NCBI GenBank assembly: GCA_965649825.1
Contig: OZ287694.1
Coordinates: forward strand, 2,327,413 to 2,368,801
Source: Penicillus capitatus
Taxonomy: Eukaryota; Plantae; Chlorophyta
Reading direction: 5' to 3'
DNA length: 41,389 nucleotides
Position numbers and translations under genes: made by a program. The notes beneath the pieces are model-generated. The model was not told where the DNA came from. It saw only the letters and a program-made list of their open reading frames with translations, and made no database searches. Shown here piece by piece: positions 211 through 40,624 of this stretch. Positions within the stretch are counted from its first letter, which is position 1; the number at the start of each line of letters is the position of its first letter.

Positions 211-249
211 TTCTAATACTTTAGGACTTAGTATCACAACTACTAAACT

Positions 250-927: not shown

Positions 928-1017
928 ATTCCTAAGAATTGAAATTTACAAGTTAGATTAAAGCTAGAATTTCTTAAAGTAATCCATATATTCACGCAAA
1001 ATTTTGATCAGAAATTT

Positions 1018-2353: not shown

Positions 2354-2385
2354 GGGCGGAATGAACGCCCGTCCTTGCGAAGGAC
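2354..2385. repeat. Two directly adjacent GC-rich hairpins in an AT-rich intergenic tract
   Basis: GGGCG-gaatgaa-CGCCC (2354-2370) immediately followed by GTCCTT-gcg-AAGGAC (2371-2385). Confidence 0.5.
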
Positions 2386-2582
2386 TTGTCTAGGTTGAAA
2401 ATAATACCTTGAATTTAGGCAAAATATAAGAAAACCGGGGTTTTAATTTAGGAGTAAAACCTATGCAAACATAGATTTATAAAGAATATTCCTAATTGTG
2501 AATATCCCTATTGGAAAATAAAATAGGAAGCATCTTTACGACACTTCCCATTAAAACTATTAGTTCAATTACTTGGTAATAA

Positions 2583-3035: not shown

Positions 3036-3075
3036 TTACACTAGGTAATAAGAGAGACAGCCTCAACGCACATTA

Positions 3076-11517: not shown

Positions 11518-12550
11518 TACCTTTTCCATCCCAATTTCAATAAAAGTAAGAACGTATTCAAAACAGAAAAATGGTTTTCAAAAAGTACAGAATCATTTTG
11601 AAACCCAATATTTTACTTTCACAAATGACGACTCCATTTTCAATCTCCATGACAACGATTTCCCATCCGGTAACATCAAATTGAAACTATAATTTCTCAT
11701 TTCAAAACAAGTCATTTCATTTAAAAAATATGTCGTTGGTTTACAAAAGATATCCATTCATTTTCAATGAACATTATCTCATCTTCAAAAAAGATTAAAG
11801 CAATTATAAAAATAAACTCAATTCTGTGTCCCGTCAATGGAGCTTGCAGACGTTCCAATCTGTTACATCTTCAACGTTCCAATTGGACAAGGGATTCTTC
11901 GCCCCCTTTGGAGCGTTCTCGACACGAGTACTTCGGCAACAAGTGAGTGGCGTTTGTCCCTTGGTGTTTCTTTACTTTGTTTTAGGTATGAATGAAGAAA
12001 CAACTCCATAGCCTCGAAGAAGAGGGACTAAGCCAGGATCAAAACGCGGAGTTTACAAAAAGACTCGACGTTCAGCTCGCCTCAGGGTGGTAGAAGAAGC
12101 GAGGCAAGGTAGGGACTGGAAGGACATGGCTTCCAAGAATGGCATTCCATATTCAACTGCAAGAGGATGGGTGGCAAAGAATTGTTTTGAATTGTTTTTG
12201 CTTTTTTTTGGAGTCAGTCTCATAGGTGTGATGTCACTCTTGACATCTTGAGACCGATTTCAAATCGCTTTGGCAGTAATTGAAAAAGGGTTGACAGCAA
12301 ATTAAATTGAAGTAACAGTTGATGTAATTTGTCGACAGATTTTCAAAATGAACGGTTCGCTCTTTAAAAAAGATGACGTTCTTCTAAAATGAAATCATTT
12401 TATTTGAATTCGGACATGGAGTATTTGAAAATGAATTCATTGGATTCAGAGCTGAAATTTAGTTTTTCAAATTGATAATACGCATATTGAATTTGATTTT
12501 TTCGTTTTGAATACGTTCTTACTTTTATTGAAATTGGGATGGAAAAGGTA
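11518..12550 (+). mobile_element. Non-autonomous Tc1/mariner (IS630-Tc1) DNA transposon, 1033 bp
   Basis: Perfect 47-bp TIRs (11518-11564 / 12504-12550) and TA duplication (11516-17, 12551-52). Removing the element plus one TA restores the same 21-nt spacing (TCCGT...TTGCGGC) seen in copy A. Confidence 0.92.
11837..12185 (+). pseudogene. 5' remnant of a spliced Tc1-like transposase (HTH region)
   Basis: ATG at 11837 and GTGAGT...TTTAG intron 11943-11985 that preserves frame. Premature TAG at 12009-12011, then YKKTRRSARLRVVEEARQGRDWKDMASKNGIPYSTARGWVAK (HTH-like), then deletion. Confidence 0.65.
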
Positions 12551-17699: not shown

Positions 17700-19690
17700 T
17701 TATCTCCATCGGAGTCTCGATTGAAGACTAGCGCCTGTTAATGTTAACATACTAAAAGTTCTACGTTTAACAGTAACGCTGTGTCGTGCGTTCCTTACAT
17801 TGAACAGACGCGAGATGAGGCGTCGTCCACACTGCAGAGAGGTGCTCTGTGGCGCATGACCTGTGTAAGAAAGACCGTTTTTTCTGGGCTCCTTAATCGC
17901 ACCTCGGCGTTCTTCGTTCAGTTTCTTCTTGAGAGTTCTGCGATCCTTCATCTCACATTCCTTCCAATTGCGAATCTCATCAATCTGCGTCCTTTCTTCG
18001 AAGGCCGAACTTCGCTGCTGTGTGCCAACGGTGCCAGACCCTTTTCTGCTCAACGGTTCTCTATTTGCTGCGCAGTCGACAATCGATGTCTTCGAAGACA
18101 ATGACACCTTCTGACAGAGATCCCTGAGCTCTCCTGACAGATGCAACAATCCAGAGAGTTTCTCGATCAGAGATGTGACTGGAGCAAAGATCTCGGGAAA
18201 GCAAATGGCCTTCCGATAGTTATCAGAGATACGACTGACACCAAGCACGCACGCGAGAATGATTCTCTGTTCAAAACCGGACGTCTCTGGACCTTCCATT
18301 AACTCTCTGAGTGTGAAGGGCACCAATCTCTTCGCTTCTGACGCCATGGCTACAGGGGTGTCTTCTGTCAGCACAGACCTCAGCTGTTCTGTGTAGAACA
18401 ACAGAGCTTCTGGGCAGTATCTATTGCCGAGTGCTTCCTCCAACAGCGATGCCGCATACAGACCCATGACTCTGACATGTCTTGACTGGCAGTACCCTTC
18501 ACAGAGATAACGGCAGAGCAGTAAGGCAACAGAGTGGGAAACGGGATGAAATTCTGGCCCGATAGGAAATGCATTGAGCAGCAGTTTGAGGCAGAGAATA
18601 TCACTCAGCGGAGGCCAAGCTCCTTGACAGTCTGCAGTTTGTCTCTTAGAGAAGTCCAGATTCATGGCTTCGATTCTGTTCTTGGCAACGATCCATGCGT
18701 CTTGCCCAAGAAGCTCAGTCAACTGAGTGATATGCCGTGTGAGGACATCCAGTCTGTCTAAGGAAACGTCTTCAGAGGCTTCATCTTTGAAGCACTCGAA
18801 CAATGTCTCGGCCAAAGCCTGGCGAGCACAAAGTTGCTCAGCTCTGAACGCCGGAGAGCGTAGGTACATACTTGTGGTCCTCCCCTCCATCGTCTGTCTT
18901 GTGTTTGTCGACTCCATTCCTGAACCGTGTAATGACTTCCTTAGATCTCAAGTCTCGGTGCAGTTCTTTGTTGACTGCCTGAATTCTACCTGCTTCGCTG
19001 GAGAGTGCTCATTGGATAGGGTAGACTGATGTTCGTTTCTGGTCATCTCAAATGACTCCTCGTCGGGCGACCGAGATCTGCGATCCTGCTCGGATGTATG
19101 GTCGAAAGGGCCAAGGATCGCCGACCTCCGTCGATCGAGCATCTTTACGATTTTATGGCTTCTTAAGTGCGGCGACGCTTCTCTACAGAGAATCCCGGGT
19201 GAACAGAACGACCCGGAAGTCTACCGTCGAGGCGTGTAATTCCGAGGGAGATCCAGGAAGATCGTCTGGCATTGGCGTCTGATGCTCGACCATCCATCCA
19301 CCCCTTGGTCAGTTGCCGTACAATGAAACCGGCAGGAAAAGCGAGACGCCATTCTCGTTGCTCGAACACGAACGTCTTCGTCCACTACCCTCCGTCGTCT
19401 TCGCCACCATCGGTCTTCAAGTTCGGCTTGACAGACCACTGCATACGGTGCGACGTGAAAACGTACACATACGAAATACTGTCTTCGTCTTGTCGTATAC
19501 ACTTCTGATCCCCTTGCAGAAATGCTTAACTCTTTGCGGCCGCTTTTCTCGAACTGCATGTGGGATTTGAAAACAGCAAACTCAGCTGGACGACTCCCAA
19601 ACGGCTCTTCTGAATCTTCCTGCCACCCGCCTTCCACGTTGGAGACCGACATTCTTGCTTTCGAACGCACAACTTACAGATTCACAACAA
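17700..19690 (-). pseudogene. NOP14: Nop14-like nucleolar (40S biogenesis) protein, degenerate copy
   Basis: WPPLSDILCLKLLLNAFP...FHPVSHSVALLLCRYL, NRYCPEALLF and LKKKLNEERRGAIKEPRK match the Nop14 C-terminal half. A frameshifted upstream AFESK...GRRV segment resembles the N-terminus. Confidence 0.7.
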
Positions 19691-21266: not shown

Positions 21267-23470
21267 CTGAATCGCACACGCATGGAGTGCAGACAGTACG
21301 ATTTACGAGAGAGAACTGGTTGTACGTGGCCATCATGACGGTGTGACTCGCGTGACGCGTGGTGACGCGAATGCTCTTGGCGAACGGCTTGAAGCTCTCG
21401 GAGAACGTCATCAACCGTGACAACTTCATTCTCGGCCAACGGTCGTAGCAAGACAGTGCTTCCAGACACCAAACCAAACTACGTGCATTTGGCGTCAGAT
21501 CTCGGCCACTCTTACACAAAGTACCTCTCTCGCTGTCTTCTGAAAAGCGCGGATCTGTTTTGCGTGGTTCTCGACGTCCACGATGAAGAAAGCGCACTCC
21601 ATGTCTTGCAGTTTATCGCACAGACGGTACAGGTCGTCGAAGCAGATGGAATGGAGTTTTGTATTCGCATCTGCCACGATGCTCCCACAGTACTCCACTC
21701 TGTGCTCTCGAGGATTCAAGAACATACAAAACAGCAACACCATAGAAGGCGGCGAGCATCGCACTAGCTGATCCTCTTCGCTGGTATGCTTGTAGAGCGT
21801 GACGACACGACAATTGTCGATATCTCTCTGTTCAGATAGCTCACACAGACGGAAATCGAGTTCCTCTAATGTGTCCAGAAGAACGGCTCTGGAAAAGACC
21901 CCGTTCTTCTTTCCGCATAGCAGCCAGAATGTCGTCTGGCGTGGATCCCATCTCAGCTGTTTCTGTATCTGCACCATTTCGCCATGATCTGGATCTCTGT
22001 TACTTAAGTGTACCTTCCGTTTGACCGTCTTCAGCGACTCGTGTGGTGGGAAGAGGTTGAGTTGGCTGCCCGATACGTCGAAGAGATGGACGGATCCAAA
22101 GTTTCGAACGTGGTTTTGGATGTGACTGTCCGCGATGGATACGATCACGACACGTGTTTCGAGCTGATGGAACGTATCTGCCAATCCAGACGTTGATCCG
22201 ATAAACGAAAGGCGTATTCCAAACTTCAACCAGCCGTCCAGGGCAAAGGAAGGACAGTCATTGCTCTCTCCATACGGCTCCGGAAGATCGAAAACAAACG
22301 GAATCGTCCTCTCTTGCGATCCTTGATGCTCTGCAAACAACACAACACTTCTATCGACACTATTCCCCATCTCTCCATAGAATGGTGCGAAGGCCGATCT
22401 CTCGTGGTTGAGTAAATTGCTGCTATCGATTGGATATGCTGCTCACTTTGAATAGAGCTCAGTTCCGGAAAGGATTGGTCGATAAGGACGGCTTTACTCT
22501 CGAGCAACTGGCATTCGGTGCTGGACAGATCCATGACTTCGAGCTTCATACGCCCGTGACCACCTGCGTTGTACAGAAAGAGACCCCTGAACAGCAGAAC
22601 CTTTTCTCGGAAATCCATCACAAGCGACAGTAGACCAGATCTTCCCACGGGAGAGAAATCTGCCAGCCCAGAAGAATGCCTCTCTTGAATATGGCTTCAA
22701 TCGCCACTGAACACCATCCGCCATCGAGATCTCACTTACTTCGCATTTCCTTACCACGCAATACGTTTCTGTCTGTCCTTCATGTACGTTGAGTTCCTCT
22801 TCGTCTGACGCGTACAGTTGCATGAGGAACGAGGCCACAAAGAATCCGCTCGAATTGGGCTGAGCTTCTGCAAAGGTGCCACCGTAGAGGCCGTTCTGCT
22901 GAAGAAGCGTCGATGGTCCTGTCACAGCGAAATGGGGACATACACGGACGGGTATTAACACTCGATCTGCCTGACCAGGAATGCGGACAGGTTTTATCAT
23001 CATCCAACAACAACGAAGGGGCGTTTCTGTGATGACCGAACTCCGCAAACGCCAGAGCGCCTCGACGCTTCCGTTCTCCTTGGCCGTCACACATGCTGAC
23101 CTGCACGTCACATTAACATCCTTGTCACAGTGTGCGTGCGTGCGTGCGTGCGAGATCTCGTTTGTCGAACCAGTCGTATCCCAAAGCTGAAAGCGTTTTT
23201 GTCACGAGCTGCTCTCCAGGCCTTCTTAAGAGGCTCTCGTGTACATAGACCTGCGTCGATGTGAATAGCTGACGGATCGTGAGGGGACGGGAGGGAGTCT
23301 ACGAAGAAACAGCTGGTTCGACCAAAAACGACGTGTGCGCCCTCTGCGTACGGAACGCCGTTGCACTCGCCGCGCTCTCCAACAAGAGCAACTCATTGAC
23401 ATTCATGGAACCGTGTGCGTCTTGTTGCGCACGACTGACTCACCATACGCCAACGCCATCTCTGTAGACG
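21026..23470 (-). CDS. MATH-repeat + USP7-type UBL + MDM2-type RING gene, copy D (candidate E3 ligase; intactness unresolved)
   Basis: FALDGWLKFGIRL, VVIVSIADSHIQNHV, LLFCMFLNPREHRVEYCGSIV. Terminal exons 21193-21266 and 21026-21137 splice into a RING. 5' boundary approximate. Confidence 0.75.
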
Positions 23471-25110: not shown

Positions 25111-26379
25111 GATGTGACACTGCCTTGTTCTGTGAGGGTCAACCGTGCGAGGGGGTGCTGCCTGTCTTGTCAACTGCGTCTTGGGACGCCTTTCTCTGGC
25201 CCTGAACACGAGCTGACTCACCATTCTAGAAGGGTTACGTCAGCAGGCGACTATATAATGCACAATCTGAGCCTTGTTTCACCTTCTCCGAACACTGTAA
25301 CAAGTCTTCCGCTGTGAATCGTTTGGTGCGGCGCTTCCGCGGTGACAGTGTTACGGGCTTGTGTCGCAATGCGGCAGTGGGCATTCGGATCCGTCCAATC
25401 ATCCAGATGCCACTTCCGGTGTCTGAATCACGCCACATTCCTTCCCAAACGATGGGTTTTTTCCTTTTGATGAATCGGCAGTGTGTCTTTTGTTTTTACA
25501 TCGCACATGAACGCCTGCTAAATGAATCGCAAGCGTCCGAAAAGGTCTGCTGTTGGGAATTGGGTATCTTGTTGTTTTTCATATTGTTCCTTTGACTGGC
25601 AATCAAAGTGCCGACAGTTTTTGCCAAACCCTTCAAATGACTGACGAACCACAGCAAAGTCTTGACCTTGTCGATCGTCAGTGAGAAAGTAATGGGTGAA
25701 TGGTACGAACGAAGAATTATTGCATGACAGCATCGGACTTACGAGAATTCGCTGTCGGCATTCACACTCGTCAAGAAATAAACGAGTGGTTCGAAGAGAC
25801 CGACCTCTCAGTCGCAACAAAGAGCAGTGAACAAAGGAATCCGTCCACATAAATGTTCCGTCGATTTTGAGATTTGTATGGCATTTTGGGAAACCTGAGT
25901 CCTAAACAGCTTCTTTTTGTTGAACGTGTGATTTCGAAACCAAAAAAGTTCTGTGTCCGTTTGCAGGAACCGAGAGCAATCCGGTTGTTTTGATGGCAAT
26001 GTTGCCATTGTCGGTGTATGATGAACGTCCTTTATTTGAAGTTCGATGATACGTACTGCGATGAATCAATCAATCCTCTATCGACGACGCCCAGTCTGCG
26101 AAGATGCTGACATGGTGCACTGAAGTGCGTCCAGCTGCAGATCAGTCATCACAACATTGTCACCATTCAAAAGTGAAGAGGCACAGCCGTGGACATTTGA
26201 TTGCCATTCAAACACTCTGTGCTATCCTCCATCTACAGAATCAATGATCATCGCCAATAAGGAAAGCCCCACAAAGATGAAGACTTACTGTCTGGCTCGT
26301 ATCAGCGTGAAATAGCGACTGTTTGACGCTGTCGTCGTTGTCTGTTCAGTGGAACGCTCATGTGGACTGTATTCAGCCA

Positions 26380-28724
26380 TCGATGGGTAGCTGTCGTTTG
26401 CCATCTGGCCGTTCTAACGTACGACAGAACGCGTCAACTCAGCGACAGCGACAAGTTCATTTGCTTTTGCGGACGCGATTCGTACAGTGTCGCGTTTGTG
26501 ACTTCAAGAAGCTTTGCAAAACCGTCCTGCCTCACACTCTTTGTTTCCTCGTGGACACGGATGGGAATTTCGCAGCGTAAGTCGCCCAAACATTTCGCCT
26601 TTTCGAACAATGCCGAAACGTGTGCCTCGAAGACGACGGTGTTCTGAGTTATAGCCCCAATCGCGGGGAGGACTTGGAAATCAGATACGCCTTGAACAGC
26701 ATCGAGGAGTCTGAAAACCAAGGCGTCCTCACGGTATGTCTTATTACGTGGTTGTCGTAAACATCGCGTTCGCCTCTACTGTGACAGGTCCATTTGGTCG
26801 GGGTAAAAAACAATCTTGTGAGAAGATGTGAAAGGGTATGCGAAACAGATAAGATCTCTTTCCTGGGATACGACTGGCACGACCACGTTAGAGACGTCTC
26901 AACACTCCTGAGGCTTTTGTGTGACACACAGGACTGTCTGTCTGACTGTCGACTCTCATTACGAGACCTATGTATCCTGGCACTTGCGAAGTTCAGTCCG
27001 CGGTGGACGGTCGCAGAGAGGCTACTGGACCATACAGAAACCTCATTTTATTCCGGGTTTCTTTCCTGTTCGAGATGCCTCTAACTAATTCGTTGAATTT
27101 CGTTTAGCGCCATTCACCACGTTTCAGCAGAATGGTTACTATGGGCATTTCCATACAGACACACAGACGGTTTTTAAGCACGGCCTACTTATTGAGAACC
27201 GTGTGCTGTTAAATCAAGAAGAGGAAGAGGAACTCGCATTTCATCACAGCACATGCGATCTCAACTATGTGGTACGGTCCCGTCGAAGCAGCAGAAAAGT
27301 TTTTCGCAATCGCAGTCGTGTTTGCAGTGGTGGTTGAAACCGCAATCGGAGGAACAGGTCTTTCGAACGACTACACTCGAATCTCCTTTTTCTGATGCTC
27401 AATGGTACTTATTGATATTCGCCTTCTGTTGTACGAAGGCTAAAGAAACTGCTTACTATCGCCTTTTCAGGAAAATCTATGTGTACTGCTCATTTGGAGA
27501 AGACAGTGAGTTGGGGTTTCGTATCGAGAATGATCATGCATGCAGCTCTAACTCGATGGAATGTCGGATTCTCCTTATCGAGCAATCTTCTCCTGAGTTG
27601 AGTTATAAGATGGGTAAGTATACGTACGTCTAATTGCTGTCCAATCAAACAAAGTGAAGAATCAAATCTGTACGCGAAGAAGCGAAACGTGCATTTTGGA
27701 TATGGAACTGCAGAGCAATGGGTCGTTCGTAACAAATGTGTGTTTGTAGAGGATCGAAGACTAGACAAGGGACCTGGTTCAGATCCTGTCTTTCAATTCG
27801 AAGGATCCGGACAAATAGATTTAAACTCCTTCATGCTCGATGGATGGTTGAAGCTTGGACTGCGTCTTTCGCGTGTGAGGTCCGACGAATACGTAAAGGA
27901 CGAATACTTTTCGAAAGTGCCACAAGTCAGGATCCAAGTGCTCAAAGACCATCATATAAGAAAGAACGTCGCGTCAAATGCCTCGACGGATGTCTTCTGC
28001 ATTCCCATCGGTTGTATTTTCTTCTGTCCTCCCAACAGATCGCTGAAGGCCGTGAAAAACATGGTATGCTCTAAGCAACTTACAATGGATACAGAAGATC
28101 CTGGACAATTTTTAGATTCAGAAAGATGCTCAACTGGATTCATCTGAATCGATAGTTTGGCTTCTTAACGCAAAGAGAGATGGTTCTTTCTCGAAGGCAG
28201 TGTGTGTGGACGCATTGGAGGAACTCGACTTTCGTCTTTTAGAGTTAAGTGTGGACGGAAAGGAGAGTGCAGAGCGTACAGTTACTTTCTACTTTCGACC
28301 GACAGGCAAGCTTCTCGATGCAAATCGTCCACAAGACAGCGTCCTTCTCTTCTGCATCTTTATGGATCCGCGAAAAAAGAAGATGAAATACCTTGGGAGC
28401 GTTGTCGTCGATGAAGATGCCGGACTCTATTCCGTCTGCTTCGGCGACATCTGCTCACTGGATGAAAGAATGACACATACAGAATGTTGCTTTTTCTGTG
28501 TGGATCCCGAGGATCGCATCTCACAGATCCGTATATTCCAGAAGACACTTAAACAAGTGCGTCTCTGTCCTTAGTGGGATGAGTGGGAACATTCAATGCA
28601 GAGTGAGGTGATATCTGGAAGTGTGTTCGTCGTGAGGCCAGTAGTGGACAACGAGGTTGTGAGTGTTGCTAAAGTTCGGGGAGAACTGCAAGAATTGCGC
28701 GCCGATCGTCATGGCCAGGCGTGA
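26380..28724 (+). CDS. MATH-repeat + USP7-type UBL family gene, copy E (inverted; possibly pseudogenised)
   Basis: CLQWWLKPQ...AQWYLL, FMLDGWLKLGLRL, IQVLKDHHIRKNV and LLFCIFMDPRKKKMKYLGSVVV. Very similar to copy A including its 3' flank. 5' boundary approximate. Confidence 0.75.
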
Positions 28725-30229
28725 CGATGTGCGTTGAGGCTGTCTCTCTTTATGCCTAGTGGACGAATGTGTGTGTCGGCAAGATTGAGGTGCTGATGTG
28801 ACTGTCTTGTGTGGGAGGGGGCCACCTTGCTCTGGGACACTCGGGGTCGTGTCATTTGAGGTTTTAGGCCGAGAAGAGACCTTTTTCTATGGTCCTGGGG
28901 CAGTACTGAATCACCTGCCTAGACATGTCGCATCACAACAAGGGTATTTAAAGGGACAATCCGAACCATGTTTACCTTGCTCCAAACAGTCTGTAAAGTC
29001 TTCCGCTGTGTGAATCTTTCGTCCGGCCCGATCTCCGACAGTGTGACTGCGCAGTTCGTCCGGCGAGGCGATTCCTGCATAAGGATCGAGTCAAACCAAA
29101 AATATCCATCTTCAACCAAACCCTCCACGGAACCGGTTCCCAAAATCCTGTTACTAGTGTCGTTCGTCATTTGGTTCGAACACTTGCGGATGGAAACTCC
29201 TTCGAAGTCAACCGACAAAATCTCCAACGTAAAGAGATGGATGGTAGTTGAGCACCCTGTGCGTTGACGCATCAAGCGACGAGACAACAAGAGAGGGTGT
29301 AAAAATGCAGATTCGATCGTCAAGGAAGAACAACGAAGGGAAGCACACTCGGTGCCTGCTGAATGTTGAATTTCTCGAAACGGCAGCTGCGAGTCACACC
29401 TGCTTGGGGGAGTGTTAAACCACTTACTTGTCCATAAACTCGATGAAACCATCCATCCTTTGTTCATTTATCCAAATCGCAGATCTGTCAACGTCACGAA
29501 GAAAGACGCGAATGTCTGCTGCAGATGGGGAAACCCGAACTGGTTTTTGCTTGTCGCCGACATCATATGGCGGGAGAATCGATTCCTTTTATGCGAACCT
29601 GAAAAGACAATGCGCAGAGCAGCAAAGCAGATCTCCAAGCCTCGATTCTTAGCGTCAAATAAAAGGAGACATCCCTCTGGTTTGATCGGCACTAAAGAGA
29701 CAACTGCGTCGACGGAAGCAAAAAAACAGCGTCCAAGTAGCTGGCTTCCTGTGTCCTTCCTCGCGAGAAGTATAGTCAGTCTCTATGTGTCACGAATGTA
29801 CGACAGACACTTCCCAAAGCCCAAAGACAAAGCATAGAGAATCAAACTGTTGATATAATCAATCGCGCATGCTTAGAAAACATCAACCGATCGTTAAACG
29901 CGAGCAAAACAAGAACTCATGCGAAACGTAGAGAATGCCATTACATAACATCAGCTTTGTTCGATTTATATGAAACGATATTATGTTAATCCAGCGACAG
30001 CGCCGGTTGAGAAACAGCCAGTTCGACTTATATGCATCGAACTCATTCACGTTGACAGAGATAACAACAAGCAGCAACAGGCCTACAACACACACCGAAA
30101 ACGAAAACAGAGAGCTGGCGTGGGAAAGAAAGAACCACGTTGCCTATGAGACACTAGATGAAAAAACATGCCATAACATGTCGATTGCAATACAAGCCGC
30201 ACGCAGTCAGGGGAGGAACGCGGCTCCAC

Positions 30230-30925
30230 TCGTCTTCGGCTTGCCTAGTCTTGGTCTTCTGCCTTCACCTTCTTGGTCACTTGCTTGGTCTTCTGCCTTG
30301 CTTGGTCTTGGTCTTCTTCTTCGGCTTACCTTGTCGCCTTCGCCTTGTGCCTGGTCTTGCTTGGTCATCTTCTTATCTGGGGTTGCTTGGTCTTTGGTCT
30401 GGTCTTTGGTCTTCGGCTTGCTTCGCCTTGTGCCTTATTGGTCGCCTTCGCCTTCGCCTTCGCCTTCGCCTTGGTGCTTGGTGCTTGGTCGCCTTCGCCT
30501 TCGCCTTGGTGCTTGGTCTTGGTCTTGGTCTTGGTCGCCTTCGCCTTCGCCTTGGTGCTTGGTCTTGGTCGCCTTCGCCTGGTTGCTTAGTCTTCGCCTT
30601 CGCCTGGTTGCTTAGTCTTCGCCTTCGCCTTCGCCTGGTTGGTCGCCTTCGCCTTGTGCCTTATTGGTCGCCTTCGCCTTGTGCCTTATTGGTCGCCTTC
30701 GCCTTGTGCCTTATTGGTCGCCTTCGCCTTGTGCCTTATTGGTCGCCTTCGCCTTGTGCCTTATTGGTCGCCTTCGCCTTGTGCCTTATTGGTCGCCTTC
30801 GCCTTGTGCCTTATTGGTCGCCTTCGCCTTGTGCCTTATTGGTCGCCTTCGCCTTGTGCCTTATTGGTCGCCTTCGCCTTGTGCCCTCTGCCTTGTGCCT
30901 GGTCTTGCCTGGTCTTGGTCTTCGC
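30230..30925. repeat. Strand-biased hierarchical satellite built from 5-6 nt modules, with a homogenised 25-bp core array
   Basis: Modules TTCGCC, TTGGTC, TTGTGC, TTGGTG. Perfect GGTCGCCTTCGCCTTGTGCCTTATT x9 plus a 20-nt partial copy at 30641-30885. Confidence 0.95.
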
Positions 30926-31119
30926 CTTCTCCTTGCTCCATCAGCATCCGTCACCGAAAAACGGACACATAAGATCTCTACCCTCTTAGCTTTCCACGTC
31001 GAACGTTAAGATTATCTTCTCTCCTCGCCCGCCCGCCTCGACAAGGTACCGCCCTCCACACGAAAGGCCCATACAACCTCCGACGAAACATAGTTCACAC
31101 GCCGGGCCGCTTCAAGAGG

Positions 31120-32150: not shown

Positions 32151-32472
32151 TGTCGCGCAGGTCGTTAGATGGAAACAATTCGAACAGCGAGCGCACTTAA
32201 ACCTTTGAAACGTGAAGTCTTACAGAACGAAAGACAAGACCTGTAGATCTACGTTTTCATAGGGTTTTGTTTAGCGATGTCACATGACGGTCGTGGGTCT
32301 ATATTAAGTAACAAAAAGGAATATTCTTCGAAGATTCCGGAATCTGTACGTGAAAGCCGCGGGTCTATTTGCGGATGGGAAGGTACAGAGAACCTACGAC
32401 CTGTCACTTGGAGATCGACACAAGTGTAGGTAGGTGAGCTCATTGTTGGGGGCGTGTTGGCTTAACACAACA
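32151..32472 (-). mobile_element. Diverged solo LTR of the same family as the 33848-40624 element
   Basis: Starts TGTCGCGCAGG and ends TTAACACAACA. Shares AAGTAACAAAAAGGAATATTCT, GCCGCGGGTCTATTTG and GAGAACCTACGACCTGTCAC-TGGAGATCGACACAAGTGTAGGTAG with the intact LTRs, plus indels. Confidence 0.9.
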
Positions 32473-33847: not shown

Positions 33848-34151
33848 TGTCGCGTAGGTTTTTGGATGGAAACAATTTTAAAGGTGGGCGCACGTAGACC
33901 TGTGAAACGTAAAGTCTTACAAACGAAAGACAAGTTCTGTACATCTACAACGCTTTTATAGGGTACTTTATTTTAAGTAACAAAAAGGAATATTCTGCAA
34001 AGATCCGGAATCTACTTGGAATCTGTGACGTAGAGCCGCGGGTCTATTTGTGGATGGGAAGGTATAGAGAACCTACGACCTGTCACCTGGAGATCGACAC
34101 AAGTGTAGGTAGATGAGCGCATTATCGCGAGCGCTACGCCTTAACACGACA
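33848..34151 (-). repeat. 3' LTR
   Basis: Base-by-base match to 40321-40624. Confidence 0.97.
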
Positions 34152-34155
34152 TGGG

Positions 34156-34173
34156 CCCACCTATCTTCTGTCT
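34156..34173 (-). promoter_or_regulatory. Polypurine tract overlapping the pol stop codon
   Basis: AGACAGAAGATAGGTGGG, 4 nt upstream of the 3' LTR on the minus strand. Confidence 0.6.
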
Positions 34174-37157
34174 AATCTCCGAAGGAAGTCACGATGGACA
34201 TTGTGCAGCGTCGAACCATTGGGCATACGGATATCCCACCGGTGGTCACTATGTTCTTTCACTACCACACAAGGATAGACCCATTTGGAGTATAGTTTGG
34301 AGTCGAGGCGGTCGGCCAACTTCGAGTTGTACCACGAGACCTCGGCTCCCACTTCAATGGGACGGATCTTAACTTTCTTGTGGTGCCTTGTCTTATTTTG
34401 CTGGTGTGCCTTAATTATTCGTTGATAAGCTAGTCCTCGGTCGGTGTCCAGCTGTGGTGGACTAGTTATCGTGCCGTTCCGTTGTGTGCCAGTTAGAAGG
34501 TATTGTGGACAGAACAGAGTCGTACTATGAATCGTTCGGTTGATCTCATGCACGCTCGTGCTCACATGTGTCGTCCAATCACCCCCCTTTTCCGCCCATA
34601 TCCTCCGAAGTCGATTTACGAGGTTTCGGTTGAACGCCTCGACAGTGCCTGCACTTTTGTGGGAATAGGTTGGGGTGTGTAGCAGATCAATTCCGTGCTG
34701 TGCGCAGGTACTCTCGAAGCTCCTGGCAATGAAGGCGCTTCCGTTGTCGCACAGGATCCTCTGTGGAGCCCCAAAGTTTCGTGCCCATTCGAGTACCAGC
34801 TTAATAGCCTGTGCTGCCGAGCACGTCTTACATGGGCGCCCCATGCCAAACTTAGTGAAAGCGTCGATCCCGGTAGCGATATACCGAAACCCGTGGCTGC
34901 CACGGTTCAGCGGTCCTATGAAGTCTAGACACAGTGTGTGGTTCGGGGATGGACTGTCAATCATACCCAAGTCCACCTCAGATCGTGGGTTGCGAAACAT
35001 TTGGCACGTCTCGCAGTTATTGACGTAATCTCGCACGTCATTGAAGTCGTTCGTCCAGCGGGTACCGTCGGACCGCAGGTTCAGGAATGTCTTCTTGACC
35101 CCGAAGTGGCCTGCATGCGCCTTCTTGATGAGCTCGGTCCGTTCTTCCGGAGTATAGGATACGGAGTTCACTTGATATCCCTGTTGCTTCTTCTTGGTGT
35201 GAAATTCGACAGGTGCGTTGTCTCTCCATCGGCTGAGAAGATCCGCTATCACGTTGTCCTTCCCCTCTACAAAACAGAAGTGGAGACGATCATGGGAAAA
35301 GTGGTGCCGGAGCCAGCAATGCTGTCTCTGGATCCGGAGGTCCTTGAACTTGTGCAGGAATGTCGGCTCCTTGAGCCAATTGACCGTCGCCATGTTGTCG
35401 GAGTAAACGAATACCTCCGTCTGCTTGATCACAAAGTAACATTCCTTCAAGGCCCGTACTATTCCCATCAGTTCTCCCAGAAAGCTTCCGACCCTCTGTT
35501 TCGTCGTGAAGGAGCCAAAGAGAACAGGTTGCAAGGTCGAGTTAAGCAATACGTATCCGAACTGGTTGAGTGGGTTACCACACCAATCCGTATACAGATG
35601 GAATGGCCCCCTTCTTTCCAACGTCAGTCGGTACGTACTGATGCATAGAGATTGAACTGCGTCCTTGTAGATCTCGTCAGCTTTGGTGTAGTCATTGTGT
35701 TCGCGCTTCAGGAATGGCTTGAGTTGCGTGACGATCGCGTCGTATTTGTAACAGTACTGTGCCAGTTGCTGGCACAGACCCATGGCCTTCTGAACGTCGT
35801 GACGTGATGTGATTGTCGGCAGCTTCTGGAGTATGGCCTGGGCCCTGTGGTAGGGGTTTAGCGTCCCGGCACTGAGCTCAGTACCCAGAAAGCTCACCGA
35901 AGTCTCAAACCAGTCACACTTTTGGCAGTTGATCGTCAAGCCATATTCGTCGAAACGTTTCAATAAAAGCTTGGTCTTGTCGAGGAGTTCCTCCTCGGTT
36001 TCGCCGCCGATCAATATGTCATCGAAGTATCGTATCACATCCAACCCCTGCAGGATGTGGGTCATGCGGTTATTGAAAAGCTCCGGACTGACGTTGACGC
36101 CTTGTGGCAGTCTTCGAAAGCCGTACGTCACGCCGTTCCAATGTAGTGCAAAGAAAAGCGAAATATTGTCGTCGATGGGGATGGAGCCGTAGCCGTGAAC
36201 AATGTCCACGATGGTGTATACGGTCCACTTGGGATCCACCTTCTGGATGATGTTCGACACCGGAATGATGGTCCCCCCTTGCGTTCCTTCGAGGTACGTG
36301 TTGATGTCGCGGAAGTCAATGGTGGGCCGGATCTTGCCATTCGGTTTGCGTATAAAGTTCAAAGGTGCTACGACGGCGTGTATTGCCTCGGCAACAGACA
36401 ACGGTCGTATGACACCCTCCTTGTTTAGCGAATCGATCTCTTTTGAGATCTCTTCGTTGGTGAGACCCGAGACGTAGTTCTCCCTCCAGCATGGCTTAGG
36501 CTCGCCCATCCAACAAAGATCCCTGTTGCGTACCCTGATGTCCCACAGCCTGCTGGTCGTCGGGCGAATGGTGTCCGAAAAGACCAGGGGAAATTCTTGT
36601 CTTAGCCGAGCCACTATCGCATCCTTGTCGATTGGTGTAGTGATGCTCATGATATTGACACGTTTGGTCTTTATTCGCAGCGGGTACTCTGTCCCATCAA
36701 CATCGACGATGGATTCCACGTCACCCTTGGCACAGCACAATCGCATCTTGCTGGTGATATGCTGTGGAACATCGGATTGGTTGAAGATTACCACGCTGAT
36801 CTGACCATTCGTGTGTACCTTGACCTTGCAGAAAATGTTTTTATTGTGGGTGCAGTCAAAGAATGCAGTCCAGGTTGTTGTTTCCGAGAACTTGAAAGGT
36901 AAGATGATACGGCGACTCCGAAAGGGTCCTAACACAAAACTTCTCCCTGCCATGAAGACGATCCAGCCGTTTTGCTTGAATGGGAATAGCTCCCGGTCAA
37001 TGGATTCTGTGACTTGGAGTGGTGAAGGTGTTAGTCTTTCTTCTTGTCTATTTGGCGGTGTCTCGTCGTTCCAGTTCGATTTCACTAGTACCAGGCGTTT
37101 CACGTGCGGCTTCTGTTGTGCGTCATGCGCCTGCTGAAAAACAGGCTGGTCCCTCAG
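34161..37157 (-). CDS. pol: Pol (-1 frame): degenerate dUTPase-like domain, RT, RNase H, integrase
   Basis: RT: RKPNGKIRPTIDFRDIN, RLPQG, YFDD at 36018-36029. RNase H: LYTDW, ELMG, YSDN. Integrase: HAGH...CETC, LDFIGP, CDNGSAF, VEAFN. The frame is open upstream to the slippery site (KKLRDQPVFQQAHDAQQKPHVKRLVL). Confidence 0.95.
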   Translation of the reverse strand: MRDQPVFQQAHDAQQKPHVKRLVLVKSNWNDETPPNRQEERLTPSPLQVTESIDRELFPFKQNGWIVFMAGRSFVLGPFRSRRIILPFKFSETTTWTAFFDCTHNKNIFCKVKVHTNGQISVVIFNQSDVPQHITSKMRLCCAKGDVESIVDVDGTEYPLRIKTKRVNIMSITTPIDKDAIVARLRQEFPLVFSDTIRPTTSRLWDIRVRNRDLCWMGEPKPCWRENYVSGLTNEEISKEIDSLNKEGVIRPLSVAEAIHAVVAPLNFIRKPNGKIRPTIDFRDINTYLEGTQGGTIIPVSNIIQKVDPKWTVYTIVDIVHGYGSIPIDDNISLFFALHWNGVTYGFRRLPQGVNVSPELFNNRMTHILQGLDVIRYFDDILIGGETEEELLDKTKLLLKRFDEYGLTINCQKCDWFETSVSFLGTELSAGTLNPYHRAQAILQKLPTITSRHDVQKAMGLCQQLAQYCYKYDAIVTQLKPFLKREHNDYTKADEIYKDAVQSLCISTYRLTLERRGPFHLYTDWCGNPLNQFGYVLLNSTLQPVLFGSFTTKQRVGSFLGELMGIVRALKECYFVIKQTEVFVYSDNMATVNWLKEPTFLHKFKDLRIQRQHCWLRHHFSHDRLHFCFVEGKDNVIADLLSRWRDNAPVEFHTKKKQQGYQVNSVSYTPEERTELIKKAHAGHFGVKKTFLNLRSDGTRWTNDFNDVRDYVNNCETCQMFRNPRSEVDLGMIDSPSPNHTLCLDFIGPLNRGSHGFRYIATGIDAFTKFGMGRPCKTCSAAQAIKLVLEWARNFGAPQRILCDNGSAFIARSFESTCAQHGIDLLHTPTYSHKSAGTVEAFNRNLVNRLRRIWAEKGGDWTTHVSTSVHEINRTIHSTTLFCPQYLLTGTQRNGTITSPPQLDTDRGLAYQRIIKAHQQNKTRHHKKVKIRPIEVGAEVSWYNSKLADRLDSKLYSKWVYPCVVVKEHSDHRWDIRMPNGSTLHNVHRDFLRRLDRR

Positions 37158-37163
37158 TTTTTT
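37098..37163 (-). promoter_or_regulatory. Predicted -1 programmed ribosomal frameshift signal
   Basis: A AAA AAC heptamer (37163-37157) directly before the ORF1 TGA; -1 frame continuous with pol; downstream GCCTG/CAGGC hairpin at 37129-37146. Confidence 0.8.
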
Positions 37164-40100
37164 GAAACAGAAACGTTGTGGATGAGTATTTTGTTACCTT
37201 TGTCGTCATAGACTGCATCCTCCTCGCAGTTGAGCTGCAACTTGAATGCCTGAAGGGCCTGCATTCCCAGAATCGGGCGTTGGACACCTTCACAGACGAC
37301 AAATGGTATCTCGGCGCTCTGTTTCCCGAGGGTGCACAACAAAGAGATCTCGCCACTCGTCTTGGTCGTCTTGTTGTTAAAGCTAATCACGTCCCGAACT
37401 TTCGACGACCTTAGGACCAAGTTGTGTTTCCTCGCCAGCTTCGCTGGAAGGACATTCGTTTGCGCACCGGTATCCAGCAGGCAAGAGATCTTTCCGGCAA
37501 TGTCCTCCATGCTGAGTGGGACATTGTACTGTAACATCCTTCGAGACTCTTGGCGCTGTACCGGATTCGTCTGTGCCACGGTCCTTGATTCTGGTGCCTT
37601 TGGAGTTTTCGTGACCGTGGGGCAGTCCTTCCAGGAGTGGCCTTTCTGACCGCATCTTTCGCATGTGTGCCCGACGTCTTGACGCATGTTCTTCCGGCCA
37701 TCCGCCCTGGCGTGTCCTCGACTGTTCTGTTCCTGTTCCAGACACTCGTCGATGATCAGTTGCACACGCGGCCAATTCTCTGCATTTCCCCACGGCAACC
37801 CACGCAGGCGTGACTGGATGTGTGCATTCGCGATGTTGAAGATCCGCTCAGTCGCTGTAGCGTACTTGAGTGGGTCTTGTACCAACTCAAGTAGCTTCGA
37901 CATTCTTCGTGCGAACTGAGACAGATTCTCCTTTCGTTTGGGCAACAGCGTGTGCACGTCCTTCATGGAGGGTCCCTTCTCGTTGTGTCTTGTGGGTGCG
38001 TGACTCACTGGTGTGCGTGGGGTTGCGGCATCCTTTTCCTGACGCTTTTGTCCCTCTTGCTGTCGTCGCGTGGCCTTTTGAACGTCGGGTGACAATTCAG
38101 GGTGATGCTGCTCACAGCTAACCTGCTGAATTCGTGTCCGATCCTCGACTGCTTCTAATCGCTGTCCGATACTGGTAAAGCTCGCTTCAAGACTTGTCTC
38201 CATTCTCCCTTGTCTATTGACAAGTCTCCTTTCGAGGTCTTCGGCGCGTCTCATGAGCTCCTCTTGCATTGCCTGTATACCTTCCATCAGGGATTGTATT
38301 AAGCCTCCTTGTTCAGTGTCTCGACGGGTCTCTGATAACGGATCTGGGTGGATTTCAGTCACTATATTCTGTTGGTTTGCCCGTCGTGGCGACTGCTGAG
38401 CCGGCGGAGGCGGTGGCGACTGCTGAGCCGGCGGAGGCGGTGGCGACTGCTGAGCCGGCGGAGGCGGTGGCGACTGCTGAGCCGACTCCTGGGTGGTCTG
38501 TTCTTGAGTCGGTTGTTGCGCCTGAGCCCCTTGTCCCCGCATCAGATTCCACACGATTCTGAGTAGCCAGCAAATCCCCTGGGTTATGGCTACGATTCGC
38601 ATCACAACCTTGCGGATGTTCCTGAATACATTCAAAATCCACGCGGCGACGTTGTATAGAAGCATAGCAGCGCCTACCAACTGCCAGCCGTTCCCCGTAG
38701 CCAGGGCGCTACGAATTGCTTTGATTCCAAATTTATCCCATAGTGTGCCTAACACCCATGTAACTGCGTTATCACGGGTACCGGTTAGCCATTTTATAGA
38801 GCGGTCGTGGAATGTATCATTCCCGTGACTGCTCTCCCAACCGTTAGCCTGGCTTTCGCAGATGCAATCGTCTAGAGCCGTCTTCATGTTGCCTGTGTGT
38901 TCGTTGATCTTGTTTATTGTCTCGCGGATATTATTGAGAGTGTCATTGAGGTGCTGCCAATCGACATTAGAACTCTTAGCATGTGACTCTTGTGACGTTT
39001 CAGGTCCTTGGTTGTCTGTCGACGAACCATTTACCGTGATGTTCAGGAACTGGGTGATGCCGTCCAAGGTCTCTGCGACGTGTCGCACTTCTCCTACGAG
39101 AGAGGACTTCCTAGATGGGAAGTTGTTGATGATCGAGACTGTCGCAGTCGTCAACAAACTCGCTGGGGAGAATACGGACAACACACCTCTGTTTGTCGCC
39201 CAGTTGACGATCCCATGAGCAGTAAGACCTACGACAGCACTAGTGATCATTGCGTCAATATAGTCTGGCCAAGTGATGTCGATTCCCATTCTGAAGTCGG
39301 GGATCATGTACCAAGATTGCCCATCTTCGACAGGTAGAGCATCTCCCATCTCGTGCAAATTGAAGACATTTTCTGGAGGGAGTTCTTGTTCTGTCCATTG
39401 GTCTTCGGACTCTTCGGACTCTTCGGACTCTTCGGACTCTTCGGACTGTTCGGGATCGGATCGCGGAGCCTCCTCGTCGAATAGATCTTCCGCCAATTCT
39501 ACCGGAATCTCGTATTCGTCATACTCGAGCTTGTAAGCTTCCGCGCTGGGTTCCGAATCCATCGGCAAGTCCGTATTAGTTTGTACGTCTTCATGTTCTG
39601 CGACGGGGATAGCGAACTCAAAACGCCTGCGGAGGGCTCTGGCTGAGCCGGCTATGGTGCGTCTGTCTTCTTCGGCATTTGTGTCTGTACACACGAGGTC
39701 ATATATCTTCTGTCTAGATGCGTCCAGCACCGCTTTTGGTTCCCACGTCTGTGAATGAGGATTGCCCGGGATTAGTAGGAAGAAGGACATTCCTGTAGCC
39801 AGAATCGGCTTTCCTCCCCAATGTATCAAGGAACCCTCGCCGAGAAGCATGATCAGCATATTGGCTTCCTCGTACGTAATGCCTTCGCTTGCGTCATAGA
39901 AGATGATGCCGTTAGGGCACTTTTTGACGAAGACCGCGATCTCCCTTTGAATTATTCTAGCCTCATTCACAGATTTGGATTGCGGTTTAATATACTTGAA
40001 ACAACTGCTCTTTTGCAGACTAGGCTCATTCTTGATTCCGTTAACCAGTGAGTCGCATGTACTTGTCGTACAGTAGAGAACTGTAGACGTCGCTTTATCG

Positions 40101-40321
40101 TAAAAGTTGTTGTCTACCTTGTCGTTTATACTACGAGCAAGGTTATCGACATACTGATCTATCCAGTCTCCGCCACCGCGGATGTTTTCCTGGATGCTTG
40201 TTAGGGTTTTATTCCGTAACCCTATTATTTCATCCTTCCAGCCAAACCATGAGCCGTGCGTGACGGCGGCAAAGTGTAGAAGAACCCACAACAGTATTGG
40301 AAGCACTCGCTCCGAAACCAT
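37154..40321 (-). CDS. gag-pro: 1055-aa ORF1: signal peptide - AAA+-like (torsin/ClpB-D2-like) domain - acidic linker - Env-like/TM region - Gag (CA-like, CCHC) - aspartic protease
   Basis: MVSERVLPILLWVLLHFAAVTHG leader; IAVFVKKCPNGIIFYD...MLLGEG...GKP; TM-like WQLVGAAMLLYNVAAWILNVF; MHR-like KENLSQFARRMSKL; CERCGQKGHSWKDC at ~37620-37663; LLDTGA and ILGM protease motifs. Confidence 0.88.
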   Translation of the reverse strand: MVSERVLPILLWVLLHFAAVTHGSWFGWKDEIIGLRNKTLTSIQENIRGGGDWIDQYVDNLARSINDKVDNNFYDKATSTVLYCTTSTCDSLVNGIKNEPSLQKSSCFKYIKPQSKSVNEARIIQREIAVFVKKCPNGIIFYDASEGITYEEANMLIMLLGEGSLIHWGGKPILATGMSFFLLIPGNPHSQTWEPKAVLDASRQKIYDLVCTDTNAEEDRRTIAGSARALRRRFEFAIPVAEHEDVQTNTDLPMDSEPSAEAYKLEYDEYEIPVELAEDLFDEEAPRSDPEQSEESEESEESEESEDQWTEQELPPENVFNLHEMGDALPVEDGQSWYMIPDFRMGIDITWPDYIDAMITSAVVGLTAHGIVNWATNRGVLSVFSPASLLTTATVSIINNFPSRKSSLVGEVRHVAETLDGITQFLNITVNGSSTDNQGPETSQESHAKSSNVDWQHLNDTLNNIRETINKINEHTGNMKTALDDCICESQANGWESSHGNDTFHDRSIKWLTGTRDNAVTWVLGTLWDKFGIKAIRSALATGNGWQLVGAAMLLYNVAAWILNVFRNIRKVVMRIVAITQGICWLLRIVWNLMRGQGAQAQQPTQEQTTQESAQQSPPPPPAQQSPPPPPAQQSPPPPPAQQSPRRANQQNIVTEIHPDPLSETRRDTEQGGLIQSLMEGIQAMQEELMRRAEDLERRLVNRQGRMETSLEASFTSIGQRLEAVEDRTRIQQVSCEQHHPELSPDVQKATRRQQEGQKRQEKDAATPRTPVSHAPTRHNEKGPSMKDVHTLLPKRKENLSQFARRMSKLLELVQDPLKYATATERIFNIANAHIQSRLRGLPWGNAENWPRVQLIIDECLEQEQNSRGHARADGRKNMRQDVGHTCERCGQKGHSWKDCPTVTKTPKAPESRTVAQTNPVQRQESRRMLQYNVPLSMEDIAGKISCLLDTGAQTNVLPAKLARKHNLVLRSSKVRDVISFNNKTTKTSGEISLLCTLGKQSAEIPFVVCEGVQRPILGMQALQAFKLQLNCEEDAVYDDKGNKILIHNVSVSKN
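38391..38484 (-). repeat. 27-bp in-frame tandem repeat encoding (AQQSPPPPP) x3 plus a partial copy
   Basis: GACTGCTGAGCCGGCGGAGGCGGTGGC x3 + 13 nt. Confidence 0.95.
39402..39446 (-). repeat. 9-bp in-frame tandem repeat encoding an SEE acidic run
   Basis: TCTTCGGAC x5. Confidence 0.95.
40309..40320 (-). promoter_or_regulatory. Primer-binding site, initiator-tRNA-Met-like
   Basis: TGGTTTCGGAGC immediately after the 5' LTR, vs plant-type iMet PBS TGGTATCAGAGC (2 differences, one of them wobble-compatible). Confidence 0.7.
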
Positions 40322-40624
40322 GTCGCGTAGGTTTTTGGATGGAAACAATTTTAAAGGTGGGCGCACGTAGACCTGTGAAACGTAAAGTCTTACAAACGAA
40401 AGACAAGTTCTGTACATCTACAACGCTTTTATAGGGTACTTTATTTTAAGTAACAAAAAGGAATATTCTGCAAAGATCCGGAATCTACTTGGAATCTGTG
40501 ACGTAGAGCCGCGGGTCTATTTGTGGATGGGAAGGTATAGAGAACCTACGACCTGTCACCTGGAGATCGACACAAGTGTAGGTAGATGAGCGCATTATCG
40601 CGAGCGCTACGCCTTAACACGACA
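40321..40624 (-). repeat. 5' LTR with TATA box
   Basis: Matches 33848-34151; TATAAAA on the minus strand at 40427-40433. Confidence 0.97.

Follow-up and report, generated by a model that had tools for sequence, protein, structure and literature searches.

A Ty3/gypsy-type element in Penicillus capitatus DNA with a Gag-like polyprotein that appears to be membrane-anchored behind a pseudo-AAA+ domain

We analysed a 41,389-nucleotide stretch of the Penicillus capitatus assembly GCA_965649825.1 (contig OZ287694.1, positions 2,327,413 to 2,368,801 of the forward strand; hereafter the window), the minus strand of which carries, at 33848-40624, a long terminal repeat (LTR) element of 6,777 bp that is Ty3/gypsy-type by its sequence and looks intact. 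Its first open reading frame (ORF1) encodes, in one frame, a signal-peptide-like N-terminus, a globular head domain, an acidic linker, a stalk and a transmembrane (TM) helix, followed by a Gag-like part and a protease (Table 1). Whereas the Gag of LTR retrotransposons is taken to be cytosolic, with membrane proteins supplied by separate env-like or small ORFs, the structural polyprotein here appears to be an integral membrane glycoprotein, and it is this ORF1 architecture, on a Ty3/gypsy-type element, that appears to be new. We consider it likely that ORF1 encodes a type-I polyprotein tethered to a membrane; for the best explanation as a whole, in which the tethered polyprotein also bears a luminal pseudo-ATPase module, we would put the chances at about even.

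A preliminary description of the window, made from its letters alone, had reported an uninterrupted ORF of 1055 residues, and this was borne out; the chance that 1055 random codons would be free of stops is about 1e-22, and exact look-ups of the protein (in 1055- and 1087-residue versions) found nothing on record. The signal peptide of that description likewise held up on hydropathy and inspection, and is conserved in relatives: a hydrophobic core at residues 6-21 (about 15 residues) is followed by T-H-G|S, with A-S-A|F at the equivalent site of a distant family. The sequons of the N-terminal half (NKT37, NIT427, NGS431, NDT459 and NDT501) all lie N-terminal of the TM helix, as had been noted, but the first is ahead of the head domain and falls outside the heptad region to which all five had been assigned; the sequon at 427 is the only one kept in both families. 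Six cysteines before the TM helix are conserved across both families. The stalk contains a strongly conserved hydrophobic segment rich in Gly, Ala, Ser and Thr (residues 357-400) and then helices (406-542) that hold the sequons at 427, 431, 459 and 501 and an invariant C486-x-C488. As to the TM-like helices reported earlier, residues 546-566 do form a hydrophobic helix, but the second is more likely a basic juxtamembrane helix (R567, R570, K571, R575, R588, R595), AlphaFold2 (AF2) modelling residues 545-599 as a single continuous helix at a predicted local distance difference test score (pLDDT) of 62-84.

Given the cleavable-type signal peptide and, by the positive-inside rule, the basic flank C-terminal of the TM helix, ORF1 would be a type-I membrane protein, its N-terminal half luminal or extracellular and its Gag-like part, protease and Pol cytosolic. 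The six conserved cysteines and the confinement of the sequons to the region before the TM helix also argue for a luminal N-terminal half. The acidic run of the preliminary description is present, as the linker behind the head, and would fit a location at an internal membrane, since acidic linkers of this kind are common in luminal proteins resident in the endoplasmic reticulum (ER).

Beyond the membrane region, the Pro-rich linker and the coiled coil were recovered as a Pro/Gln linker and a long helix that is probably a coiled coil. Residues 739-795 are disordered, and the ordered parts of the AF2 model of residues 640-935 are only the 74-residue helix and a helical unit of about 75 residues. 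This unit had been likened to a capsid C-terminal domain, which we could not confirm, as it had no fold or profile match: Foldseek with the low-confidence model returned nothing at E<1 (best E=1.7). The CCHC knuckle and the protease are where they had been described, and the retropepsin matches the Pfam models PF13975 at 29.9 bits (cut-off 28.2), PF13650 at 24.3 (equal to its cut-off of 24.3) and PF00077 at 20.4 (below 20.7). Judging by its position between primer-binding site (PBS) and protease, its knuckle and its protease, we regard the C-terminal half as the probable equivalent of Gag-Pro. Its capsid would either be reduced beyond recognition or have passed part of its role to the membrane-anchored part. 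The earlier account of a gypsy element is supported: Ty3 is the best PDB match of its Pol, and a single frame places Gag-Pro after a signal peptide, a presumably luminal part of some 520 residues and a TM anchor.

The head corresponds to a globular domain that had been estimated at about 200 residues; it is globular and alpha/beta in kind, but closer to 170 residues (75-245). Pfam gave nothing in the N-terminal half of ORF1. The AF2 model of residues 1-600 has a beta-alpha-beta core in the head (residues 78-190, pLDDT 57-77), and a Foldseek search against the PDB returned 37 matches at E<1e-3, all of them to the second nucleotide-binding domain (NBD2) of ClpB, Skd3/CLPB, ClpC, ClpA or Hsp104, or to human TorsinA (6oif_A). 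When a profile of the head was compared with 177,635 PDB sequences, Skd3 was matched at E=1.9e-5, over an alignment spanning the Walker-B strand to the sensor-1 strand, and the NBD2 of ClpC and ClpB at about 1e-3. A profile built from element sequences only reached a best E of 0.006 against the PDB, its top 27 matches being nearly all Clp/Hsp100, and the viral structure library BFVD yielded AAA/P-loop ATPases only. No viral glycoprotein or fusion fold was found among PDB folds, PDB sequences, Pfam or BFVD.

Little of the nucleotide-handling apparatus is left in this domain. Walker A is absent, the strand-1 region reading LYCTTSTCDSL with no G-K-[ST]; Walker B reads IIFYDA, in which D143 is kept and the catalytic Glu has become A144; and strand 4 ends in LLIPG, with no polar sensor-1 residue. 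The C-terminal small alpha-helical lid is missing too, the acidic disordered linker following directly after strand 5. Cysteines 84, 89, 107 and 135 are conserved, and all members of both families keep an invariant A-L-R-R-R (229-233) where the helix that precedes strand 5, the last strand, comes to an end. On these profile and model matches, we conclude that the head is a degenerate AAA+ domain of the Clp/Hsp100-NBD2/torsin clade; because Walker A, the Walker B Glu and sensor-1 are gone, it would be a catalytically dead pseudo-ATPase and no working member of AAA+. Mitochondrial targeting, considered because Skd3 is mitochondrial, was rejected: the N-terminus of ORF1 has a 15-residue hydrophobic core with one Arg and one Glu, and the head domain bears conserved cysteines and sequons.

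A cellular homologue of the head was found in Chlorella ohadii (KAI7844878.1, P0012; E=4.5e-5 for the whole library in a HMMER scan with the N-terminal half). This green-algal 'SAP domain-containing protein' consists of SAP, a hydrophobic/TM helix and two copies of the pseudo-AAA+ domain, and it shares with the head the three N-terminal cysteines and, in its first domain copy, ALRRR. Its layout, in which a DNA-binding domain would be nucleoplasmic and the pseudo-AAA+ part luminal, with a TM helix between them, is that of an inner-nuclear-membrane protein like LAP1; such a layout outside animals may merit its own study. The RALRRR stretch of ORF1 was also considered as a furin-type site between surface (SU) and transmembrane subunits, and rejected, as the motif belongs to the AAA+-like domain and has been kept in the cellular homologue from Chlorella. 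The luminal domain of LAP1 has an AAA+-like fold without nucleotide motifs and supplies an arginine finger to torsin (PMC4358337), and in the lumen of the ER and nuclear envelope there are no AAA+ proteins other than torsins (PMC7175109). With LAP1 and LULL1 the ORF1 head would have in common a large, membrane-anchored, luminal AAA+-like domain with its nucleotide motifs lost, no lid and a conserved arginine (PMC4358337, PMC4999309); it differs from them in lying within a retroelement polyprotein and, as set out below, in its sequence and fold matches. We therefore treat the relation to LAP1 as a likeness in logic, not as membership.

The architecture recurs in relatives. A search with ORF1 as query against 5.8 billion proteins gave four (P0001-P0004) at 61-84% amino-acid identity, of which three cover the whole length (P0002-P0004, 100% of ORF1 at 61-65%). 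Each has an LTR pair of its own (99.7-100% identical) and adjoins ordinary eukaryotic genes, and the four contigs that carry them belong to a single long-read metagenome assembly, ERZ25074695. Long genes neighbouring the relatives (Rpb1, NB-ARC-TPR) are uninterrupted ORFs, and the Rpb1, on a neighbouring contig, has mammalian Pol II as its nearest match among solved structures. ORF1 is split by one frame break in one of these four relatives and has a short in-frame deletion in Gag in another; the rest are open. An exhaustive HMMER scan with the N-terminal half against 1.84 billion representatives gave 11 proteins, including fragments of a second, distant family, which was seen in two samples and is about 30% identical to ORF1. 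A copy of this family (L005, assembly ERZ26696514) is collinear with ORF1 residues 1-1055 at 28-48% identity, and with pol at 60-72%. It is decayed: frame changes interrupt ORF1 at least twice, and in pol frame changes and stops number at least four each. The stretch that leads from TM helix through linker to Gag nevertheless falls inside one alignment and in one frame. Since both families have the fusion of the N-terminal half to Gag, it is, to judge from this distribution, older than their split.

Members without the extension, which the preliminary description had regarded as the mark of a one-off capture, were not found, in a search space limited for closer outgroups. Scans of JGI metagenome contigs, with pol and with the stalk alignment, gave no relatives, and a profile search with the mixed N-half alignment A2 gave almost no matches, its candidate list having probably been taken up by low-complexity words of an acidic or Pro-rich kind. 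To gauge selection, we computed pairwise ratios of nonsynonymous to synonymous substitution (dN/dS) by the Nei-Gojobori method. These were 0.20-0.44 in the head, 0.12-0.36 in the acidic linker and 0.17-0.30 in the stalk (with dS around 0.8-1.4; a single near-identical pair gave 0.56), as against 0.11-0.31 in the Gag part and 0.08-0.13 in the protease. By these ratios the N-terminal half is under purifying selection, like Gag, and the fusion is conserved under such selection in every relative found. Other copies with the same fused ORF, which had been proposed as a check together with a dN/dS below one on the N-terminal half, exist as four copies and a second family, and the ratios on that half lie at 0.17-0.44, the linker reaching down to 0.12.

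The LTRs of the window copy are identical at all 304 of 304 positions and run from TG to CA (TGTCG...CGACA on the coding strand); with 1010 open codons in pol, the earlier remark that the LTRs are identical and pol is intact was correct. A PBS-like stretch of 16-18 bases, TGGTTTCGGAGCGAGT(GC), begins with TGG at the usual position of a primer-binding site. Unlike its flanks, its first 16 nucleotides are the same in the five close copies and in divergent L005. No matching tRNA gene turned up when the window and the relatives' loci were scanned for tRNAs. The ORF1 start codon straddles the junction of LTR and PBS, the A of its ATG being the last base of the 5' LTR, and L005 has the same arrangement of LTR, ATG and PBS. 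A PBS can thus double as the start of a signal peptide, and its translation as such would account for an N-terminus fixed as MVSER across families that are otherwise about 30% identical; P0008 and P0014, proteins about 33% identical, have the same first five residues as ORF1. An in-frame ATG at 40417, 96 nucleotides upstream, was rejected as the start, as only two of the five copies have it and the TATA box begins just 16 nucleotides before it. The polypurine tract and the PBS are conserved in all copies. A 4-bp target-site duplication flanks two copies, L001 and L004, and none was recognisable in L002 or L003. Distances between copies are mosaic (window copy against L001: dS of 0.23 in the head, 1.6-1.8 in Gag and protease), which points to recombination between co-replicating lineages. 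Taken together, LTR pairs 99.7-100% identical in five copies, the duplications in two of them and the mosaic distances indicate that the element is, on sequence evidence, recently active.

In the mechanism that we propose, the ribosome would be targeted to the ER, some 520 residues would be translocated, and the TM helix would stop transfer. The Gag-like part, protease and Pol would remain on the cytosolic or nucleoplasmic face, able to bind RNA, and nucleoprotein assembly and reverse transcription would proceed tethered to membranes of the ER or nuclear envelope. Membrane binding and some of the lattice formation, otherwise the task of matrix and capsid, would pass to the TM anchor and the luminal part, and the element's protease, acting on the cytosolic side, would cut in the linker and free the core. 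The luminal head might be an oligomerisation module, or it might dock onto and activate a torsin-type AAA+ in the host's lumen, as LAP1 and LULL1 do with torsin; docking would couple events in the lumen to the clustering or budding of tethered cores. This docking is the weakest step of the proposal, and we hold it doubtful. It is also unlikely that the lineage captured a cellular luminal pseudo-AAA+ domain, fused it via a TM helix to Gag and uses a host luminal AAA+ to cluster, bud or cross a membrane. If true, the element would have an envelope or egress module unrelated to the known classes of viral Env, and would supply the first link between a retroelement and torsin.

Several points weigh against a tethered polyprotein with a luminal pseudo-ATPase. 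The predicted topology comes from inspection and hydropathy, and the AF2 model of ORF1 residues 1-600 has a mean pLDDT of 42.8 on a shallow alignment. The arginine cluster may be assigned to the arginine-finger position of AAA+ proteins by the order of secondary structures. TorsinA appears in the fold search only, the head being nearest to Skd3/ClpB by sequence, and neither LAP1 nor LULL1 was among the PDB sequence matches or the best 50 fold matches. The name Gag rests on position, CCHC knuckle and protease, as no capsid fold was matched by Pfam or PDB profiles. All of the relatives come from just two metagenome assemblies (ERZ25074695 and ERZ26696514), and the window copy has no recognisable target-site duplication. 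Finally, splicing or internal initiation may yield a separate Gag.

The preliminary description had labelled the N-terminal half Env, and an Env of a new kind is the alternative that survives best. The N-terminal half would then be a true Env, its head SU-like and its fusion subunit TM-like, made as an Env-Gag polyprotein and split by proteolysis, and the element an enveloped endogenous virus infectious from cell to cell. In favour of this, the N-terminal half combines sequons with a signal peptide at its start and a TM anchor at its C-terminal end, and has a very conserved hydrophobic segment (residues 357-400) followed by long helices with an invariant CxC. It also evolves much faster than pol (between families, identity is about 30% as against 60-70%), as an env would, and the order ENV-GAG-POL is reported for Ty3/gypsy elements of oribatid mites (PMC13524379). 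However, no viral fusion or attachment protein was matched in the PDB or BFVD, and the head is of an AAA+ type that is shared with a cellular algal protein. The sole multibasic site (RRR233, residues 231-233) is a conserved motif of that domain, also present in the Chlorella homologue, and lies about 120 residues before the hydrophobic segment, which has no cleavage site beside it. Searches of Pfam and PDB sequences with profiles of the stalk and of the whole ORF1 returned only noise and no relative of the stalk, whose AF2 model is too poor to judge its likeness to a fusion subunit. A covalent 1:1 fusion of Env to Gag is, moreover, unknown among retroviral Envs. On balance we find the Env label unlikely, and do not retain it.

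Less probable again is that the two halves are separate products. A spliced or internally initiated mRNA would give an ordinary cytosolic Gag-Pro(-Pol), leaving the N-terminal half as an accessory membrane protein similar to MDG1 sORF2 or to the upstream ORFs of Tat elements; there are precedents for accessory ORFs ahead of gag (PMC11952523, PMC4408406). Cryptic acceptors are conceivable in the Pro/Gln linker, which is rich in pyrimidines and repeats CAG, and the capsid-membrane logic of a fused product is itself a proposal. Separate cistrons, however, would face no constraint to stay in one frame, and no stop or change of frame lies between the halves in intact copies, the single frame also being kept in the family at about 30% identity. 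In addition, the first conserved AUG is that of the signal peptide, and thousands of bases, with many AUGs, precede Gag. That the architecture is an artefact, whether of chimeric assembly or of a single capture of a host gene fragment by a decayed element, is highly improbable. The left end of the window is indeed a mosaic with bacterial DNA and the window copy lacks a duplication, but the same architecture, with intact LTR pairs around it, is found on four other contigs and in a second sample, the start codon overlaps the PBS, and dN/dS is well below 1 on every segment.

The membrane-tethered polyprotein that we favour has partial parallels elsewhere. The glyco-Gag of murine leukaemia virus (MLV; gPr80) is a type II protein whose Gag part is luminal and glycosylated, and it coexists with normal Gag made from a downstream start. 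It is similar in that an in-frame N-terminal extension places Gag in a membrane; ORF1, in contrast, would be type I with a cytosolic Gag, behind an extension of about 650 residues with folded domains of its own, so that glyco-Gag, offered earlier as a precedent, has the opposite orientation. Structural polyproteins of the flavivirus and alphavirus type combine capsid-like and glycoprotein parts, with a signal and stop-transfer topology and a viral protease cutting on the cytosolic side; here the glycoprotein-like part comes first, the element is reverse-transcribing, and there is no homology. With Ty3/gypsy elements (Metaviridae) the element shares its TG...CA LTRs, PBS-like site, polypurine tract, the order of protease, reverse transcriptase (RT), RNase H and integrase, a CCHC before the protease and a frameshifted Pol. 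It differs from them in an ORF1 that opens with a signal peptide and some 600 residues of luminal and TM sequence, in having no recognisable two-domain capsid, in a protease in the gag frame and in an extra domain of about 190 residues before RT.

The mite elements resemble the present one in having a gene for a membrane-glycoprotein-like protein on a gypsy-type element, 5' of a short gag; their ENV and GAG appear to be separate ORFs, and their Envs are kin to known viral envelope glycoproteins, whereas here there is one frame and an AAA+-like head (PMC13524379). An env 5' of gag thus has some precedent, and it is the single-frame fusion that we did not find described. Elements of the MDG1 group carry sORF2, a FAST-like TM protein upstream of gag, which is likewise a membrane protein 5' of gag in sense orientation and dependent on the LTR promoter, but it is a separate ORF of about 70 residues with an ectodomain of some 30 residues, and has no layout of signal peptide and large luminal part (PMC11952523). 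Plant Tat elements also have extra ORFs upstream of gag (PMC4408406). In a literature search that was not exhaustive, we met no account of a single frame that joins a signal peptide, a luminal domain, a TM helix and Gag, nor of a retroelement protein with a Clp/torsin-type domain. A polyprotein built into the membrane would be a distinct solution to the problem of how retroelements engage membranes, and if the head engages torsin machinery, the element would offer a natural probe of nuclear-envelope and ER-lumen remodelling and represent a new route to virus-like properties.

Table 1. Features of the LTR element, in window coordinates and in order along its coding strand (aa, residues of ORF1).
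Feature	Position	Strand	Details
5' LTR	40321..40624	-	304 bp; TGTCG...CGACA; carries TATAAAAG at 40426-40433 and AATAAA
PBS-like TGGTTTCGGAGCGAGTGC	40303..40320	-	abuts 5' LTR; doubles as ORF1 codons 1-6 (MVSERV)
ORF1	37154..40321	-	1055 aa, single frame, stop-free
Signal-peptide-like N-terminus	40253..40321	-	aa 1-23; n-region MVSER, h-region VLPILLWVLLHFAAV, c-region THG; by hydropathy; conserved
Head domain	39587..40099	-	aa 75-245; alpha/beta, about 170 aa
Acidic linker	39317..39586	-	aa 246-335; 33 D+E in 90 residues (37%), SEESEESEESEESE; length varies between subfamilies
Stalk	38687..39316	-	aa 336-545; hydrophobic small-residue segment 357-400, then helices
TM helix and basic juxtamembrane helix	38528..38686	-	aa 546-566 and 567-598; by hydropathy; conserved in both families
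Pro/Gln linker	38342..38527	-	aa 599-660; 27-nt repeats (AQQSPPPPP)
Long helix	38111..38332	-	aa 664-737, 74 residues; AF2 pLDDT 71-91; probable coiled coil
Small four-helix domain	37697..37924	-	aa 800-875; pLDDT 50-75; at expected capsid position
CCHC zinc knuckle	37622..37663	-	aa 887-900; C-x2-C-x4-H-x4-C; PF00098 E=0.013
Retropepsin	37232..37528	-	aa 932-1030; D-T-G at 950-952
ORF2 (pol)	34161..37193	-	1010 open codons, -1 frame; 40-nt overlap with ORF1
Predicted -1 frameshift signal	37129..37163	-	heptamer A_AAA_AAC 37157-37163; ORF1 stop 37154-37156; inverted repeat 37129-37146
RT	35877-36353	-	Pfam match in ORF2; followed by RNase H-like region and integrase zinc-binding domain
Integrase core	34662-35150	-	Pfam match in ORF2
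Polypurine tract AGACAGAAGATAGGTGGG	34156..34173	-	just 5' of 3' LTR; overlaps pol stop; kept in all copies
3' LTR	33848..34151	-	304 bp; identical to 5' LTR

The second frame of the element encodes Pol, which with the protease of ORF1 gives the Pfam order of protease, RT, RNase H and integrase, and its best PDB match is Ty3 Gag-Pol (7q5b, E=1.2e-21); the probable nearness of the RT to Ty3 is read from this match and the Pfam order. The overlap of ORF1 and ORF2 ends in a canonical slippery heptamer, A_AAA_AAC, right before the ORF1 stop, and ten bases farther on comes an 18-nucleotide inverted repeat, GCCTG-N8-CAGGC. Heptamer and repeat are identical in five copies and in L005, whose protein is about 45% identical there. 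Pol is predicted to be reached by a -1 frameshift at the heptamer. Between protease and RT, the first 190 or so residues of ORF2 (36624-37193, minus strand) form an extra domain, which is conserved, being about 60% identical in the divergent family; it had no Pfam or PDB-sequence match, and just a sub-threshold one to FLYWCH.

Among the divergent relatives, P0008/P0026 is an intact ORF of 515 residues that joins signal peptide and head in frame with integrase. It is an internally deleted derivative of the divergent family, present on at least three contigs (1.2-1.8 Mb), and may have spread as a non-autonomous form. Close to the element in the window, 1.4 kb beyond its 3' LTR, a solo-LTR-like sequence (32151-32472) is 74% identical to the element LTR and in the same orientation, with no coding remains adjoining it. 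A tandem array of 25-nucleotide repeats, GCCTT/GGTC-rich and with a strong AT skew, lies just outside the element at 30430-30932.

At the left end of the window, positions 1-3037 are mosaic bacterial DNA, with eukaryote-like sequence from 3038. A UbiX-like fragment (1-686; 47.5% guanine plus cytosine, GC) is followed by 2,351 bp (687-3037, GC 36%, with an MTHFR gene at 1018-1971) that are 100% identical to a circular 8.07-Mb Bacteroidota chromosome, ctg340593_31x_c, from sample ERZ25074695. This points to chimerism of the contig, or else to DNA inserted very recently; a chimeric left end would leave our reading of the element intact, since the element recurs on other contigs. A pair of 2.7-kb inverted repeats (3039-5700 and 26125-28761, 75% identity) brackets about 25.7 kb, with shorter copies at 7470-8155 and 10275-10666, and the pair may mark where a large mobile element ends on either side, or may belong to an interspersed repeat family. 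Four minus-strand ORFs at 7406-8038, 21495-22370, 12467-13156 and 22494-23111 make up two paralogous pairs (44% identity over 140 residues and 48% over 46), with no Pfam match for the two members scanned, and look like a gene duplicated inside the bracketed region. Also on the minus strand, an ORF at 17700-18917 resembles Nop14 but matches just the C-terminal 40% of the Pfam model, the host gene being either intron-split or truncated.

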